A stretch of 63,987 nt of DNA, counting the filler, from Chiloscyllium plagiosum (Eukaryota), in NCBI RefSeq assembly GCF_004010195.1. It is 12 parts of 12 records of this genome, joined end to end, with 100 filler letters (N's around TTAATTAATTAA, not from the genome) between each part and the next. Parts side by side here need not be neighbours in the genome. Positions count along the whole stretch, not along the records: positions 49,465 to 56,706 come from NW_025201652.1; positions 56,807 to 59,571 come from NW_025184622.1; 10 more parts are not named here. One strand, 5' to 3'. Both the position numbers and the translations under genes were made by a program. Of this stretch, positions 49,465 through 56,883 are shown one piece after another. Positions within the stretch are counted from its first letter, which is position 1; each line of letters starts with the position of its first letter. The notes below the pieces were generated by a model. The model saw only the letters and a program-made list of their open reading frames with translations. It did no database searches and was not told the origin of the DNA.

Positions 49465-50310
49465 CAACCACTAGGAGGTTGAACAGTTCATCACACTGAC
49501 TAAAACCTTCCACCCTGACCTAAACTTCACAGGGACCATCTCGAACACCTCCCTCCCTTTCCTAGACCTCTCCACCTCTATCTCCAGTGACCAACTAAAC
49601 ATTTACTACAAGCCTACTGACTCTCACAGCTACCTGGACTACATCTCCTCCCACCCGACCTCCTGTAAAAATGCCATCCCTTATTCTCAATTCCTCTGCC
49701 TCCACTCGCATCTGCTCCCAGAAGGATTAGTTCCACCATAAAACATCCAAGATCCTTTTTTTTAAAGACTACAATTTCCCCTCCCACGTGGTCGACAATG
49801 CCCTTGAACCCATCTCTCCAATTGCAACAGGGATCCCTCCTGGTCCTCATTTTCCACCGCACCAATCTCGCATACATCATATCATCCTCCGCTGCTTCCA
49901 CCACCTGTAAACAGACCCCATCACTCGGGGTATATTTCCCTCTCTACACCTATCCGCATTCCGGAGACACCATTCCCTCCCTCGGCAGGTCCATGCCCCC
50001 CCCCCCCAGATCAATCTCCATCCCTGTCACCTTTTCCTGCCACCACAGGAAATGAAAAACCTGCACCCACACCTCCCCCTCACCTCCGACAAGGTCCCAA
50101 ATAATCCTTCCACATCCCACAGAAACCTATCTATACTTCCACAAATGTCATCGACTATGTCTGTTCCACCTGATGTGGTCTCCTCTACATCAGTGAGACA
50201 GGACACTAACTTGCAGATCATTTCAGAGAACATCTCTGGGAAACCCGTGCCAACCAACCCCACGGCCCCATGGCTGAACACTTTAAATCCCTCTCCCACT
50301 CCACCAAGAA
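49465..50310 (+). mobile_element. Penelope-like element fragment
   Basis: FHPDLNFT, LPFLDLS, IYYKPTDSHSYLDY, KNAIPYSQFL; related to 11153-13510. Confidence 0.8.
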
Positions 50311-52959
50311 CAGACGATCATATTCCTGTTCAATTCCAACGAATAAATACAAAATAACCGAGACTGAATTTGGGATGATATTAACAGAATTTATTTTGAT
50401 CTAAGCATGAATGGATTATTTTGACATTACAGGTGGAGAGATTCACTTCCTGAAAAAGCAGCACAAGTGATATAAGCTGGCACCAAACCGAGTTTGGTTA
50501 ATACTGAGGCAAATATACAGCATACAGTATTGAGTGAAATTAATAAAGAAACTATCTTAACCCCGGAACAAGATATAGTGTATTAAATATGAACAAAGAC
50601 ACAAGTATTTTAGGATGTAATAGAAAAGTAATTTATAGTATATTGAAATGCAAACAGAGATGTGAATTTGTGTCTCTACATTCTTCCTAGCTAAATTAAT
50701 CATTTCAGAAATGCCTTTGTTAATTTTCATGTATCACCTCGTCGGTCCACTCCACGAACCTTGCTAGGTCCTTGTTAAATTCTGAACCATCAGGCGATGG
50801 TTCACAGTGGTTGCGAGTTTCATATTACAGCAAATTGTGATGTTGTCCAGAGAGTCAGGTGGATTTTATTGATATCATTGAACCGAATGCTTGGAATATT
50901 TCCGGTATGAATCATGCGAATTAGAGCCTCTGAAAGAGACAAAGTAGGAAAGATGAATTTCGGAAAAATGAAGTTTTCACGTCAGAGAGAGATCACTTCG
51001 CCCATCATACCTGTATCACTTGAAAACAGAACCTGCCAGCCAACACCCACTTTATAGCATGTTGTCCATAACCCTGCAGGTGATAGCACTTGAAGTAAAC
51101 ATTCGGGAATATTGTGTAGGGTCTAATCCATTATCAACATAGATATGATCTCCAATACTGTAGGTCCTGGCTGATGGGGAAAAAGTAGGGGCAGAACTTA
51201 TCAATATTCAAACAGTTGGTACAGCCCTGAGGAGCTAATAGACCCATTTCTAAACGTTGTTTCTCAGGACATTTTGACAATTTTTGACTTAATAGCATTG
51301 TAAACTTACATGAAAAAAAATGCAGACCTGTTCCCCAGAAATGCTGACAGCAACATACCTTTACTCAGTTAAGATCAGCAACATGAATTAAGAAAGTTTT
51401 TAAAAATCTTTCTTTTAACTAATTATTGACAACACAGATTTCACAAAGTGAAAAGTACAGAAGGGAAGGGTGGAGGGGTAGGTATGTACGATGTTCACTT
51501 GTGAGAAACAAAGCTCACACACTTCAATAGTTTCAGTCCAAGACAAAATCTGAATCCGTAGTGCCCTTTATTTGACTCTTGCAAGAGGGTGTGATGTCCA
51601 CTGTCGACAAGGCAGGGACATACACACTGAATTTAACTAATACACAATATTTATGTAATTTTGTTTTTTTTTATATCCTATTGCTCCTCCCAGTTTGCAT
51701 CTTCCACTTCCCTAAGACCAGCACCCATTACTCCTGTTTATCTCTTGCCTTATCCGGCCTTGTCTGTGAGAAAATGCTTAATTCTGGTCTCACAAGGCCG
51801 TTTGACCTCATCCCGCTGTGGGTCATTGTTAGGCATATCCTTTCTTCATCATTATCTACTCCCTCCATTTGTGCCTTCCCCTACCAGACTGATCCTTATG
51901 ACCCTTTTAATTGGGGTTTGTTCCAGTGTTTCTGTAAAAGTGGGAAACAGATGTTTATACCTACTGTTTGTACAGGCGTATCTAGCATAATTCGCTCCCC
52001 TCGCAGCATCTTATCTATTCGTCTGTAATATCTACCATTGTTTTGCAGTCACGTTTCATTCTTGCATACAATTTTAGCTAATACAAAACAATTATGTTGG
52101 GCCGAAGGGCCTGTTTCCACACTGTAAAGTAATCTAATCTAATCTAATTATGTATTTCCTCCATGTAGTTTCCATTCTTGTTGACTCAGCTCTTGGCTGA
52201 AACAATTACACACTGGTGTGAGTTCATTTACTTTGTATAAGTAATTATAATTGCAGAAATAACACTACTTTACCTATATCCCACACACTGTTCCCTGATA
52301 TCTGGTTGCATTTGTGAGCAACAGATGAACCTGCGAACCACATTCAGGATGGTACTGCAGGTATTTCGGCAGATACTGTGTACACGGAATTCTCCCATAA
52401 ATCAGCAATGGCATGAACATGTATTTTTTATGGTGTTTGAAGCCAAATAAAATTGAACAATNNNNNNNNNNNNNNNNNNNNNNNNNNNNNNNNNNNNNNN
52501 NNNNNNNNNNNNNNNNNNNNNNNNNNNNNNNNNNNNNNNNNNNNNNNNNNNNNNNNNNNNNNNNNNNNNNNNNNNNNNNNNNNNNNNNNNNNNNNNNNNN
52601 NNNNNNNNNNNNNNNNNNNNNNNNNNNNNNNNNNNNNNNNNNNNNNNNNNNNNNNNNNNNNNNNNNNNNNNNNNNNNNNNNNNNNNNNNNNNNNNNTTTT
52701 GTTTGATAAAATAATTCATCGTAGACTTCCTCAGAGTAACTCATGTCAACAAACTTGTTTTTTTTTTGTGTGTGTGTGTGGAGAAACACACGGAATGTTA
52801 CTTTATTACGATTGATGTGAACCATTTGCATTTCAGAAGTTATTTGAAAACGTCCATCGCATTAGATACGCGAATAAATTTTACAAATCATTGATCAAAG
52901 GGAACAATGTTTTTTGGACTCAAGGAAGATCCACAGTGATATTTTGTAAATGTTTGGAG

Positions 52960-53295
52960 CTGGGATTATTTTCAATGTTTGACCCAGACATTCCCTATGG
53001 TGAGGGATTTCAACAATAGGGAACATGTTTTTACAATGAGAGGAGAAATTTTTTTAAAAAGATATCAGAGACAACCTTTTACACAGAGAATGGTTTGTGT
53101 GTGGGATGATCTGGTGGTGGATACTTACAATCTTTAGAAGACATTTGGATCAGTAAATGACTATCAAATGTTTGGAAGGATATGGGCCAAGTGTATACAT
53201 GTGGGATTAGTTTAGTTTGGGATTATGACTGGCATGGACTGGTTGGACCGAAGGGTCTGTAACCATGCTGTATCACTCCATGACTCTATGACTAT
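52960..53295 (+). mobile_element. CR1 LINE 3' fragment
   Basis: ttttacacagagaatgg..ggaccgaagggtctgt..(gactctat) tail. Confidence 0.7.
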
Positions 53296-55253
53296 TTGTC
53301 AATTTTTCTCAATATTAAACAGTGCTCTAGTGATCCTTGAATGAGCTGTTGATGTTTAGGTTGTGTCTAAGACTCTGCGAATATTTCCTTCAATGAGAGG
53401 AGGGACTAGTTCTCCAAGTTACATAACTGAAAAATAAACTTTCCTCCAGCATTGTTGCTGAGTTGATTTGTTTCTGCGGAGGCAGTGGTTATGTTTTGCA
53501 GTTTGCTTTCCACCAACTGGTCAACAGTGAGACAAAATATCTTTGATCCACTGCAGAAACTCCACCTGCTTCCAGTAAATGAAACTGGGAACTCAAGGAC
53601 CTTTTCTGTAGTCAGCTTAATTGCTGCCAACTATTGTATCTGGCCGATTAAAGGGAAAATGAATCAACTAAAGTAAACTCCTACGAAACATACTATAGTT
53701 TCCCATTTACTCACATTGGATACATTTCACTTGGCATTTCTTCTTTAAAAAGGAAAGTCAGTGAATACAGCATTCACTGTATGACTATCAGAAAACAGGA
53801 CATTGAATGCAATGACGTTCTAGTTAGTTCAGCCTGTTTACTGAGTATCTTTAAAGCTCCTGAATATGAAGTTAATGGATTCAAAATCCCACATTGTAGT
53901 AACCTTTGTTATCATCTCAAAGTAAATTAACAAAATTGAACTGGTTCAAACTCACATCACTTGTTACACCATTCTCTGATTCAAGCATCTCATTAAAACT
54001 GAGTGAGCCCTTTATACATGGTTAACACTGGTGTAGTGTAACAGCGAATTTTTGCTGATTTTTATGAGTTAACTGTCCTGTCAGAGCGATTAGTGAGCAG
54101 AGAAATGTACTGTTTATAACCTACATTCGTGGTAATTATTACTGTAATACTCTCTAATTTGACCAAACATTCCTGATGTACCCAGACTGTTACATGCAAT
54201 GGTTTAGACGTTGAGGATTAAAAAAAAACTAATGGACTGCCTTGTTCTAGTTCATTAGATGCTCTTTCAAAAGTTTACCTTGGTGTTATGTATCATTGCG
54301 GACTCACATTTTGTTTCTCAAGCACACAGCTTTCCTCAACTATGCATTTTAGTGTCGGAGCCATTTGAAAAAAAAAGATGCAGGGAGAAACATTCTGCAA
54401 TGTAAGGAGGTGCTTCTAATCTCCAGGTCCAAACTGTTATTGACATACACTCACATTCTGAACATAATCACTTTAGACATGCTCCACATTAGGTTGCCGA
54501 AACTGAATTTAGAAACGCAGATTAGAAATGGTATGTTGTTTTGTAATGTGAGAGAGACTTTGAGTGACAGCAAAAATAAAGTCACTCATTTTGTTGGCTA
54601 ATAATATTATTGAAGTTCTTTTTAGCTTTTTCTGCTTGTGGTGGAATGTAGGATGAAAGGGAGTTAACTTCTAATTGAATATTCTAAATATAATCACTTT
54701 GGACACGCTCTGTATTCAGTTGCCTAAATTGAATTTTGAAATGTTTCGTATGAATTACATGTTATTTTGGAGTGCGTCAGAGACTTGCAGTATCCAGGGA
54801 AGAAAAGCTCAACTGTTTTATTAGCTAGTTATATGTTTGAACTTTAATTTTAGTTGTATCTGCTTGTGAATGAATGTAGAAATAAAGGGAGCTAACTTCC
54901 AGTTGAAATTTTTTTTTAAACAAAATACATGCAACTATCATGTGAAACAGACCTGAAGCTACTCAAATCTACTTCCAAAGAAACTATTCAGCAAAACTAA
55001 TATCCCAAGATGTGTATGTGTCCATGTTTAAGCAGAACCTCATGTAAAGACATGACCCCATGTTGTGTTCGGGCTGTGCAAGCTGATACCAGGATCCAGT
55101 CTCAGCCTCCAGCAGGACACCAACAGGCAGAAGCTGTAAGCCTGCCCCTTCCGATGGCCATATAAATCCTGGGCACTGGACAGTAATTCAACACTCCTGG
55201 GTCGGCTCTGTTTAGAAAGATCTTGACAGAACCGTTTCCCACAAGTTATCAGA

Positions 55254-55735
55254 ATGATTGTGTCGACAATTTTTCTCAGTTTGTTACTGACATTCTTATC
55301 ATGTGAGTGTTGTTTTTTCAAGCATCTTTTTGTGACTGTCTCAATTTTAGTCTACCGCAGGAATGTAAAAGACTCAGCCATCATTTCATCAGCATTAATG
55401 CTCATGGTTTATTTGTTTTCTTTTTTAAAGGTGTCCAGTCGGAGGTTGTTTTGACCCAGCCAGAGGCAGAGACTGGCCGTCCCGCAGGCAGCCTGAAACT
55501 GACCTGTAAAACCAGCGGGTTCAATCTTGGCAGCTACTACATGAGCTGGGTCCGACAGGTTCCCGGACAGGGTCAGGAGTGGCTGATTAGCTACTATACT
55601 TCATCCAGCAGTTACTATGCACCAGCGATTACGGGTCGATTTACTGCGTCCAAAGACACTTCAAACAACATTTTCGCGTTGGACATGGAGAACCTGAAGA
55701 TCGAAGACACCGCCGTCTATTACTGTGCAGGAGAC
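55254..55735 (+). CDS. IGHV: IgM-type VH (VH-D), open and unrearranged: leader 55254-55302, V exon 55431-55735
   Basis: [16 protein letters not shown]|[51 protein letters not shown]; TATA-like catataaat near 55160. Confidence 0.94.
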
Positions 55736-55774
55736 CACAGCGAGAGGAACCAGGGCTGGACCCATTCAAGAACA
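55736..55774 (+). promoter_or_regulatory. VH-D 23-RSS with mutated nonamer
   Basis: CACAGCG-23-TCAAGAACA (TCAAAAACA in VH-B and VH-C). Confidence 0.88.
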
Positions 55775-56134
55775 GCTTGAGGGAACATTTTGTCAATTCC
55801 ACCATAAACTGACGGTCAGTACGAGTTTTAAATGCAATTATACCAACTGCGATCTGAAGCAGACCTCAGGCTGCCTCTTACAAAACTATCAAAGAGGAAA
55901 TGTACCATTTAAACTAGCAAACTGGTGACACAATGGGACAATGTTTTGGGCATGTCATATGTACTGCTAACACTTCCATCAATTAAATGCTCGGACAAAA
56001 TGTTAGTTTTAATATATCTGACAGCTCAGGAGATCACTGCTAATTGTTTTGTCAACTATGGCATTAATTCTAAACAAGATCAGTACGAAATGGCACTTTC
56101 AAATGAAAATTGAGACCTCCAGGAAAGAACAGAG

Positions 56135-56162
56135 AATAAGTGTACTTGTCTCCATCATTGTG
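56135..56162 (-). promoter_or_regulatory. 12-RSS retained 5' of the fused DDJ block
   Basis: CACAATG-12-ACACTTATT, homologous to the D1 5' RSSs at 49101-49128 and 44185-44212. Confidence 0.85.
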
Positions 56163-56234
56163 ATACGACAGTGGGTAACTGGGGTTACCATCTTGGCTAC
56201 TGGGGCCAAGGGCCCATGGTAACAGTGACTTCAG
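56163..56234 (+). CDS. IGHJ: Pre-joined D1-D2-JH segment (V-DDJ configuration)
   Basis: D1 ATACGACAGTGGGT, then AACTGGGGT (7/9 match to the D2 core AGCTGGAGT), then JH; reads TTVGNWGYHLGYWGQGPMVTVTS with G|GTAAGA donor; no intervening RSS. Confidence 0.9.
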
Positions 56235-56883
56235 GTAAGACCCTTGAACTTTCTTAGTGACTTTTTAATAACTTTCTATTCATGTGACTAATTTCTGAAT
56301 TAAATTAAACTCAGATTTTTTGCTGAGTTTGGTTTGGTTCGGATTGATTTTTGTTCAGACTAATAATAGACTTCAGTTAAGGCTCAGCAAATAGTTACAA
56401 TGGTGATGATCGAGTCAGTTACTCGGTGTATCTCTTTTTTTGATCAGATGGGCATTCTGTGTGGCTGGGTTACTTGAAACATCTAATGTATCTTAATCAG
56501 TCAGCTATAAATAATGTTTAATGTCAGTGACATCCTGACTGTGAGTTTTATTATCAACAACAAACGCTAAGAATTCAAAGATGTTCGAGATATTACTAAA
56601 CATGATTAAAATATGCTAAAATATCATTATTCACTTCTTGAATATATGTTCTTACCCTGATTATATTTTCTCGTGTATTTTGTTAATTTTGTTGATTGCA
56701 AGCAGGNNNNNNNNNNNNNNNNNNNNNNNNNNNNNNNNNNNNNNNNNNNNTTAATTAATTAANNNNNNNNNNNNNNNNNNNNNNNNNNNNNNNNNNNNNN
56801 NNNNNNTGAAATTCAGTGCTGACAATGACCTTTGCCCTGTTCTATTTAATGTTGTGTCTCTTCTGTGGACTGTCTCCAACACT

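Follow-up and report, generated by a model that had tools for sequence, protein, structure and literature searches.

A shark heavy-chain minilocus with D1, D2 and JH probably joined in the germ line and VH left unjoined

Can a shark immunoglobulin (Ig) heavy-chain gene be inherited with its two diversity segments and its joining segment (D1, D2 and JH) already fused, while its variable segment (VH) stays apart? The question is raised by a 7.2-kb gene piece (positions 49,465 to 56,706, from NW_025201652.1) within a stretch of 63,987 nucleotides (nt) of Chiloscyllium plagiosum DNA (assembly GCF_004010195.1); this whole stretch is the window, and all coordinates are positions in it. Germline-joined antibody genes have been known in sharks since the 1980s. 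We read the piece directly, recomputed what was read, and aligned to 55200–56706, at 90% likeness, the contigs of four public sequencing runs: X1 (organism A, sample S1, study P1), X2 (organism A, sample S2, study P2), X9 (organism B) and X15 (organism A, study P7). The piece is probably an IgM-type shark heavy-chain minilocus whose D1, D2 and JH became fused in germ-line cells with VH left apart (V-DDJ); the D1-D2-J joint is real and most likely inherited.

The fused block consists of 72 nt of coding sequence at 56163–56234 (all features lie on the + strand unless stated), directly followed by GTAAGA, and it is open in the J frame (TTVGNWGYHLGYWGQGPMVTVTS, no stop). Its JH carries the W-G-x-G motif (YWGQGPMVTVTS) ahead of the GTAAGA splice donor, as in an IgM minilocus. 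No intact heptamer of a recombination signal sequence (RSS) was found within the block, the nearest strings being GACAGTG and AACAGTG, and the interval 55254–56240 contains no N. A heptamer-only search of the piece returned 30 matches against 23.2 expected, so that a heptamer by itself is no proof, and heptamer, spacer and nonamer were scored together. Upstream of the block, D1 retains its 5' RSS with a 12-nt spacer (12-RSS) at 56135–56162, composed of AATAAGTGT, the spacer and CATTGTG (CACAATG on the other strand). As a motif this element is weak (the nonamer matches at 4/9 positions, and the piece holds five matches of equal quality against a shuffle mean of 1.5), so its identification depends on where it lies and on the sequencing runs. 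It is spanned without a gap by X1 record 4, X2 record 22 and X9 record 31, and the last of these, from the other species, carries an unrearranged D1 behind a matching 12-RSS.

On the V side, the gene has the split leader and VH exon of the shark VH family that are expected of a cartilaginous-fish IgM minilocus. The leader exon, read by translation from the ATG at 55254, occupies 55254–55302 (16 codons plus 1 nt) and is almost the same as in protein P0001 of the bamboo shark Chiloscyllium punctatum. A leader intron of 128 nt follows (55303–55430; GT donor at 55303, AG acceptor at 55429–55430), and contigs of X1 and X15 contain the corresponding GT..AG splice joint from 55302 to 55431. The VH exon (55431–55735) is an open reading frame with the C..W..YYC pattern, ends in YYCAGD, matches the Pfam V-set family (E 8.8e-17), and at the protein level shares 85% identity with a Chiloscyllium punctatum protein and 79% with Heterodontus HV01. 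Directly behind it, at 55736–55774, lies an RSS with a 23-nt spacer (23-RSS), recognised by its motif: the heptamer CACAGCG (55736–55742), the spacer and the nonamer TCAAGAACA (55766–55774). This is the sole match of its quality in the 7.2-kb piece, where 300 shuffles gave a mean of 0.09. From the V coding end to the D1 coding start the distance is exactly 427 nt, and the segments of nurse-shark clusters lie about 400 bp apart (PMC2435157). A 23-RSS behind V and a 12-RSS before D1, some 400 bp from each other, is again the layout of an IgM minilocus. The V-D1 intersegment DNA between them (55775–56134, from sequence reading and contig matches) is matched by contigs of X15 (55785–56083), X2 (55852–55992, 0 differences) and X9 (55200–56004).

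The runs differ in kind. X1 looks like RNA from lymphoid cells, with the leader splice joint, six V-J joints carrying untemplated letters, and a V exon depth about 50x the intron depth; one loose end, beginning after 56234, has a related J spliced to other letters, which on a reading by hand may be the start of a mu-like first constant domain. X2 is DNA-like: it has no splice or V-J joints, and its depth is alike over exon and intron. Several X2 contigs break at the GATC at 56078–56081 and continue with GATC and unrelated letters, breaks that look like proximity-ligation (Hi-C-type) junctions. No aligned contig of the four runs, which represent two species, agrees with the window at 56221 or at any of seven intron positions after J (56269, 56306, 56318, 56320, 56362, 56365 and 56367), so none of the runs contains the assembly's own copy, which is therefore a private, divergent paralogue or allele.

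The relatives captured in these runs supply the segment borders. Contigs of X1, X9 and X15 match the window up to 56176 and then leave it for CACAGTG, a 12-nt spacer and a nonamer, that is, for the 3' RSS of an unrearranged D1. Other contigs, from X9 and X15, match only from 56190 onwards, and the loose ends before that point end in CACTGTGACT (CACTGTG followed by ACT), which are the RSS and the first letters of an unrearranged J. These paralogue signals at 56176 and at 56190 identify the block as a genuine coding joint of D1, D2 and J. The same borders assign 56163–56176 to D1, whose 14 nt are untrimmed at both ends (the heptamer marks the 5' end, contig loose ends the 3' end), and place the start of J at 56187–56190. 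The 10 nt in between (AACTGGGGTT) thus come from D2 or from the joining process. Within them, the 9-mer AACTGGGGT recurs between D1-like letters and J in one rearranged X1 complementary DNA (cDNA) contig, with near-copies in two more; a D2 origin of AACTGGGGT is thus well supported, though by these cDNA contigs and not by a germline D2. We accordingly annotate 56177–56186 as a putative D2-derived core, AACTGGGGT(T), whose outer letters are possibly N or P nucleotides, and 56187–56234 as JH by translation (..YWGQGPMVTVTS), its first 3 nt being uncertain, with ACC here and ACT after the paralogue heptamer. A coding joint free of RSSs and of intersegment DNA, as found here, is one feature of a germline-joined Ig gene.

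Two side observations concern these borders. On visual comparison, a part of the nurse-shark primer RSS-D1 (PMC2435157), once reverse-complemented, equals 12 letters in the 3' RSS region of the paralogue D1. One X2 contig has nine other letters directly 5' of 56190 in place of the J RSS, and these could be either another germline D-J joint of this species or a ligation junction.

The anatomy set out so far is the one that the original prediction had described from the sequence, and it stood up to recomputation: a gap-free contig, a V 23-RSS and a D1 12-RSS in that order with their 427-nt gap, an unjoined VH, and a D1, a D2-like 9-mer and JH fused in one open frame with the inner RSSs gone.

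Is the joint inherited, or was it made in a lymphocyte? It was recovered twice outside the assembly. X1 record 4 matches 56088–56234 with 1 difference and 0 gaps at a depth of 8.94, and X2 record 22 matches 56078–56212 with 1 difference and 0 gaps at a depth of 20.8; both carry the joint together with the intact upstream RSS. The same joint is thus present in two runs from two studies and two samples, and at 56221 neither copy has the window's letter. The gene can be followed among its relatives by a private C at 56120. This letter accounts for 9.0 of 725.9 units of depth in X1 and for 20.8 of 2446.8 in X2, exactly the depths of the two joined contigs, and all other contigs have G there, including those that enter the D1 RSS. 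Among the aligned contigs of X1 and X2 there is no unrearranged contig with C at 56120. That all of the 56120-C depth is joined in both runs argues against a somatic intermediate, although in the DNA-like X2 the 20.8 units, all joined, are perhaps partly copies of one ligated molecule. The match of X1 record 4 stops exactly at the J donor and continues with 7 further letters, as would a transcript of an unrearranged V-DDJ gene spliced at J. Judged by sequence differences alone, the sources of X1 and X2 would be independent animals, and the joint is probably common to at least two, and probably three, sources.

These data bear directly on the explanation that the window holds a somatic V-DDJ intermediate, caught through lymphocytes in the sequenced tissue and not inherited. 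Such a state is documented: V-DDJ is prominent among the somatic intermediates of nurse-shark Group 5 genes (PMC2435157). A somatic product, however, should accompany a far deeper germline form and carry a junction private to one clone. Instead, the joint recurs, identical bar 1 difference, in the assembly and in runs from two separate studies; the contigs with the diagnostic C in these runs are never unrearranged; and the depth of 20.8 in the DNA-like X2 is far above what a single polyclonal junction would be expected to reach. We therefore regard a somatic origin as highly improbable, and the germline reading in the original prediction is supported by the two runs and by the joined state of all 56120-C depth.

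Several points nonetheless weigh against a germline V-DDJ gene as assembled. None of the aligned runs contains an exact copy of the window's gene; the best share of sampled words is 0.42, and no run reaches half. The window's V letters at 55575 and 55632 are absent from X2, and the only X2 contig to share the window's V-RSS letters departs from it 10 times over 155 nt. Among the listed organism A contigs, the overlap around 56078–56083 is just 6 nt. Given the missing V letters and this short overlap, the link from V to DDJ comes from the assembly alone. The first 126 letters of X2 record 22 are foreign to the window, the break falling at the GATC at 56078–56081; these letters could be a ligation partner, in which case the mismatch would do no harm to the joint but the depth of 20.8 could partly be copies of one molecule. 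Contigs of organism B (X9) show only unrearranged forms. The tissues and individuals behind the runs are coded, and their independence from the assembled animal is what the sequence differences suggest. Constant exons are absent from the piece, which ends 472 nt past J within the J-C intron (56235–56706, from the GTAAGA donor); in the nurse shark the first mu constant exon (Cmu1) lies 6.3–6.8 kb from J (PMC2435157).

The same points lend some weight to an alternative in which the DDJ joint is real and germline and the piece is a mosaic of paralogous clusters, or a collapsed consensus, with its V taken from another cluster. The absent V letters and the divergent V-RSS region in X2 would fit it, as would window letters in the J intron that occur in none of the four runs, the failure of the listed organism A contigs to bridge 55992–56078 with gene-specific letters, and the many near-identical copies of the family (depths of 1400–2400 against 20.8). 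Other observations speak for a single gene. In two runs the joint continues upstream into an intact 12-RSS and at least 85 nt of D1 flank, and it is hence unattached to any V. The 427-nt spacing and the flank agree with the usual cluster layout, which is seen in X9 record 25 and X15 record 12 and, at about 400 bp, in the nurse shark (PMC2435157); no N interrupts the sequence from V to J; and the private differences, being substitutions, are in keeping with a divergent copy that the run animals lack and not with a chimera. A mosaic is accordingly unlikely in our estimation, and whether the assembled V belongs to the DDJ block is the main residual doubt about the V-DDJ reading.

How would such a joint arise? 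RAG recombinase acting in germ-line cells is the most likely agent, as proposed for other germline-joined shark Ig genes (PMC2193156, PMC5192425, PMC4279169). Two coding joints, D1 to D2 and D2 to J, would have removed four RSSs and both intersegment stretches, leaving D1 untrimmed, cutting D2 back on its 5' side and adding few letters or none. The V 23-RSS and the D1 5' 12-RSS survive, so that one V-to-DDJ join in a lymphocyte is still allowed under the 12/23 rule, which would yield a complementarity-determining region 3 (CDR3) with a fixed C-terminal part. We infer both the agent and the place, as we do the ability to rearrange and the IgM identity of the gene.

The layout could also be imagined without RAG, through unequal crossing-over or gene conversion between a V-D-D-J cluster and a joined VDDJ or VD-DJ cluster, and paralogous clusters are numerous enough, with flanks similar enough, to permit exchange. 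The exchange point would, however, have to lie within the 14 nt of D1 or precisely at their edge; no donor gene turned up; and D1 is untrimmed beside a normal RSS, just as a direct D1-D2 coding joint predicts. We give this origin very little credence. A processed retrocopy was ruled out as well, since the gene keeps its J intron and the flank of D1.

If the germline V-DDJ arrangement is accepted, can the gene still rearrange? The V 23-RSS faces a 12-RSS and meets the 12/23 rule, so a single V-to-DDJ join would be possible. Joined bluntly, V and DDJ would be out of frame (a full V codon plus 2 nt), as is usual, and about 1/3 of joins would be productive. Recombination in one light-chain-like step, giving a semi-invariant CDR3, as the original prediction supposed, is plausible. 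Other observations speak against easy function. The V RSS letters at 55764 and 55770 are unlike those of nearly all aligned contigs (the differing stretch is 55764–55778), and the G at 55770 falls within the A tract of the V nonamer, where almost all contigs have A; together with the poor D1 nonamer, it makes the ability to rearrange uncertain. The poor D1 nonamer is common to paralogues that evidently rearrange. Finally, a rearranged V-DDJ product is seen in 0/6 of the listed X1 V-J joints, all of which land at 56190–56198 with other letters intervening. Because rare variants are lost from contigs, the 0/6 joints into 56163–56186 are not evidence of absence. A D-mu-like protein made from a sterile transcript was considered and ruled out, as the J frame has a stop 5' of D1 and no ATG after it.

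A further step would be to suppose that the species keeps an inherited, working V-DDJ class, possibly in several copies, which needs one V-to-DDJ step and supplies an innate-like repertoire whose CDR3, for the most part encoded in the germ line, varies only at the V-D junction. We hold this to be a rather doubtful, tentative extension. If it were true, the V-DDJ repertoire would lie between that of the fully germline-joined IgM1gj gene of the nurse shark and that of ordinary clusters.

Among known systems, the closest in kind are the joined IgM clusters of horn shark and skate, likewise of the minilocus type and likewise with inherited coding joints that lack RSSs and intersegment DNA. Two reviews give only VD-J, VD-DJ and VDJ as germline heavy-chain forms (PMC5192425, PMC4279169). 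In these reviewed forms V is always fused to D, whereas here V is free and D-D-J is fused, which leaves one recombination step to be made and a V-D junction open to variation. The closest in layout are the somatic V-DDJ intermediates of the nurse shark, named '2R', which are identical in arrangement, D1-D2 and D2-J having been joined before V-D (PMC2435157). They arise per cell beside the germline form, whereas here the unrearranged form is absent from the contigs of two runs. Any pair of nurse-shark segments can join first, and a germline V-DDJ is thus an expected product of RAG in the germ line (PMC2435157). IgM1gj, a fully germline-joined VDJ with a proposed role in early-life immunity (PMC4279169, PMC5192425), shares the germline-fixed CDR3 and differs in being complete, needing no RAG, against the one join left here. 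In mouse DJH and light-chain V-J loci, too, a unit with a 5' 12-RSS (the D-J unit) faces a V 23-RSS with one step left (PMC2435157). The mouse DJ is somatic, however, and here the J frame has no ATG-led opening upstream of D1 and hence no D-mu-like protein.

Fused D segments are also found outside IgM, and nurse-shark type III IgNAR is one such case. Pre-joined D segments are likewise described for bamboo-shark IgNAR2, 5 and 6, clusters with germline-fused D segments in which recombination with V and J is still to come (PMC8692893). IgNAR differs from the present gene in isotype, in having three D segments, and in leaving J outside the fusion. For Chiloscyllium plagiosum itself, 37 IgM clusters have been counted, with no joining states given (PMC8692893). 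As a side observation, the Rhincodon typus protein P0008, annotated 'Ig heavy chain V region' and 145 amino acids long, runs continuously from V through CDR3 to a J-like WGQETMVTVTA, and could represent either a germline-joined VDJ or a gene-model artefact.

The original prediction had left it open whether a germline V-DDJ had been reported before, and the literature searched answers this in part. V-DDJ occurs, among the matches listed, only in PMC2435157, where it is a somatic intermediate with two rearrangements. No germline V-DDJ was found in a search that did not cover the original horn-shark and skate reports or two review articles of recent date, so that an earlier description may exist. 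Searches for the phrasing 'DJ joined' together with shark, and for the J peptide strings, gave no literature match, and a search of the genome-era literature returned nothing on the states of shark IgM clusters. The germline-joined class being known, we view V-DDJ as a little-described addition to it, expected rather than surprising.

Further features surround the gene. A candidate TATA box (TATAAAT, 55161–55167), proposed from reading the sequence, lies 87 nt 5' of the leader ATG. The exact octamer ATGCAAAT is absent from the 300 nt 5' of that ATG, the closest copy with one mismatch being at 54929, and matches to the octamer are at chance level (10 observed, 11.1 expected). Two head-to-tail copies of a unit some 227 bp long (54455–54680 and 54681–54907, 72–80% alike) lie just 5' of the VH promoter region; Tandem Repeats Finder reported 0 repeats and thus missed this duplication. 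In the J-C intron, an RSS-like site on the − strand at 56516–56543 (CACAGTC, a 12-nt spacer and ACATTAAAC; 6/7 and 6/9 matches) is the best motif with a 12-nt spacer in the piece and may be due to chance. At the far 5' end, a Pfam search of the open stretch 49478–49741 returned 0 families; a hand translation of 49508–49741 (+ strand) resembles a motif found behind the reverse-transcriptase domain in fish retroelements.

The main evidence for RAG activity in shark germ cells comes from antibody genes joined in the germ line, and V-DDJ extends the listed germline set of VD-J, VD-DJ and VDJ. It would show that joining in the germ line, like somatic joining in the nurse shark, proceeds without a fixed order. 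The locus would be a natural heavy-chain gene with one recombination step left, which could bear on the restricted repertoire of early life, and it raises the question whether, in one lineage, a four-segment locus could become a two-segment, light-chain-like locus.

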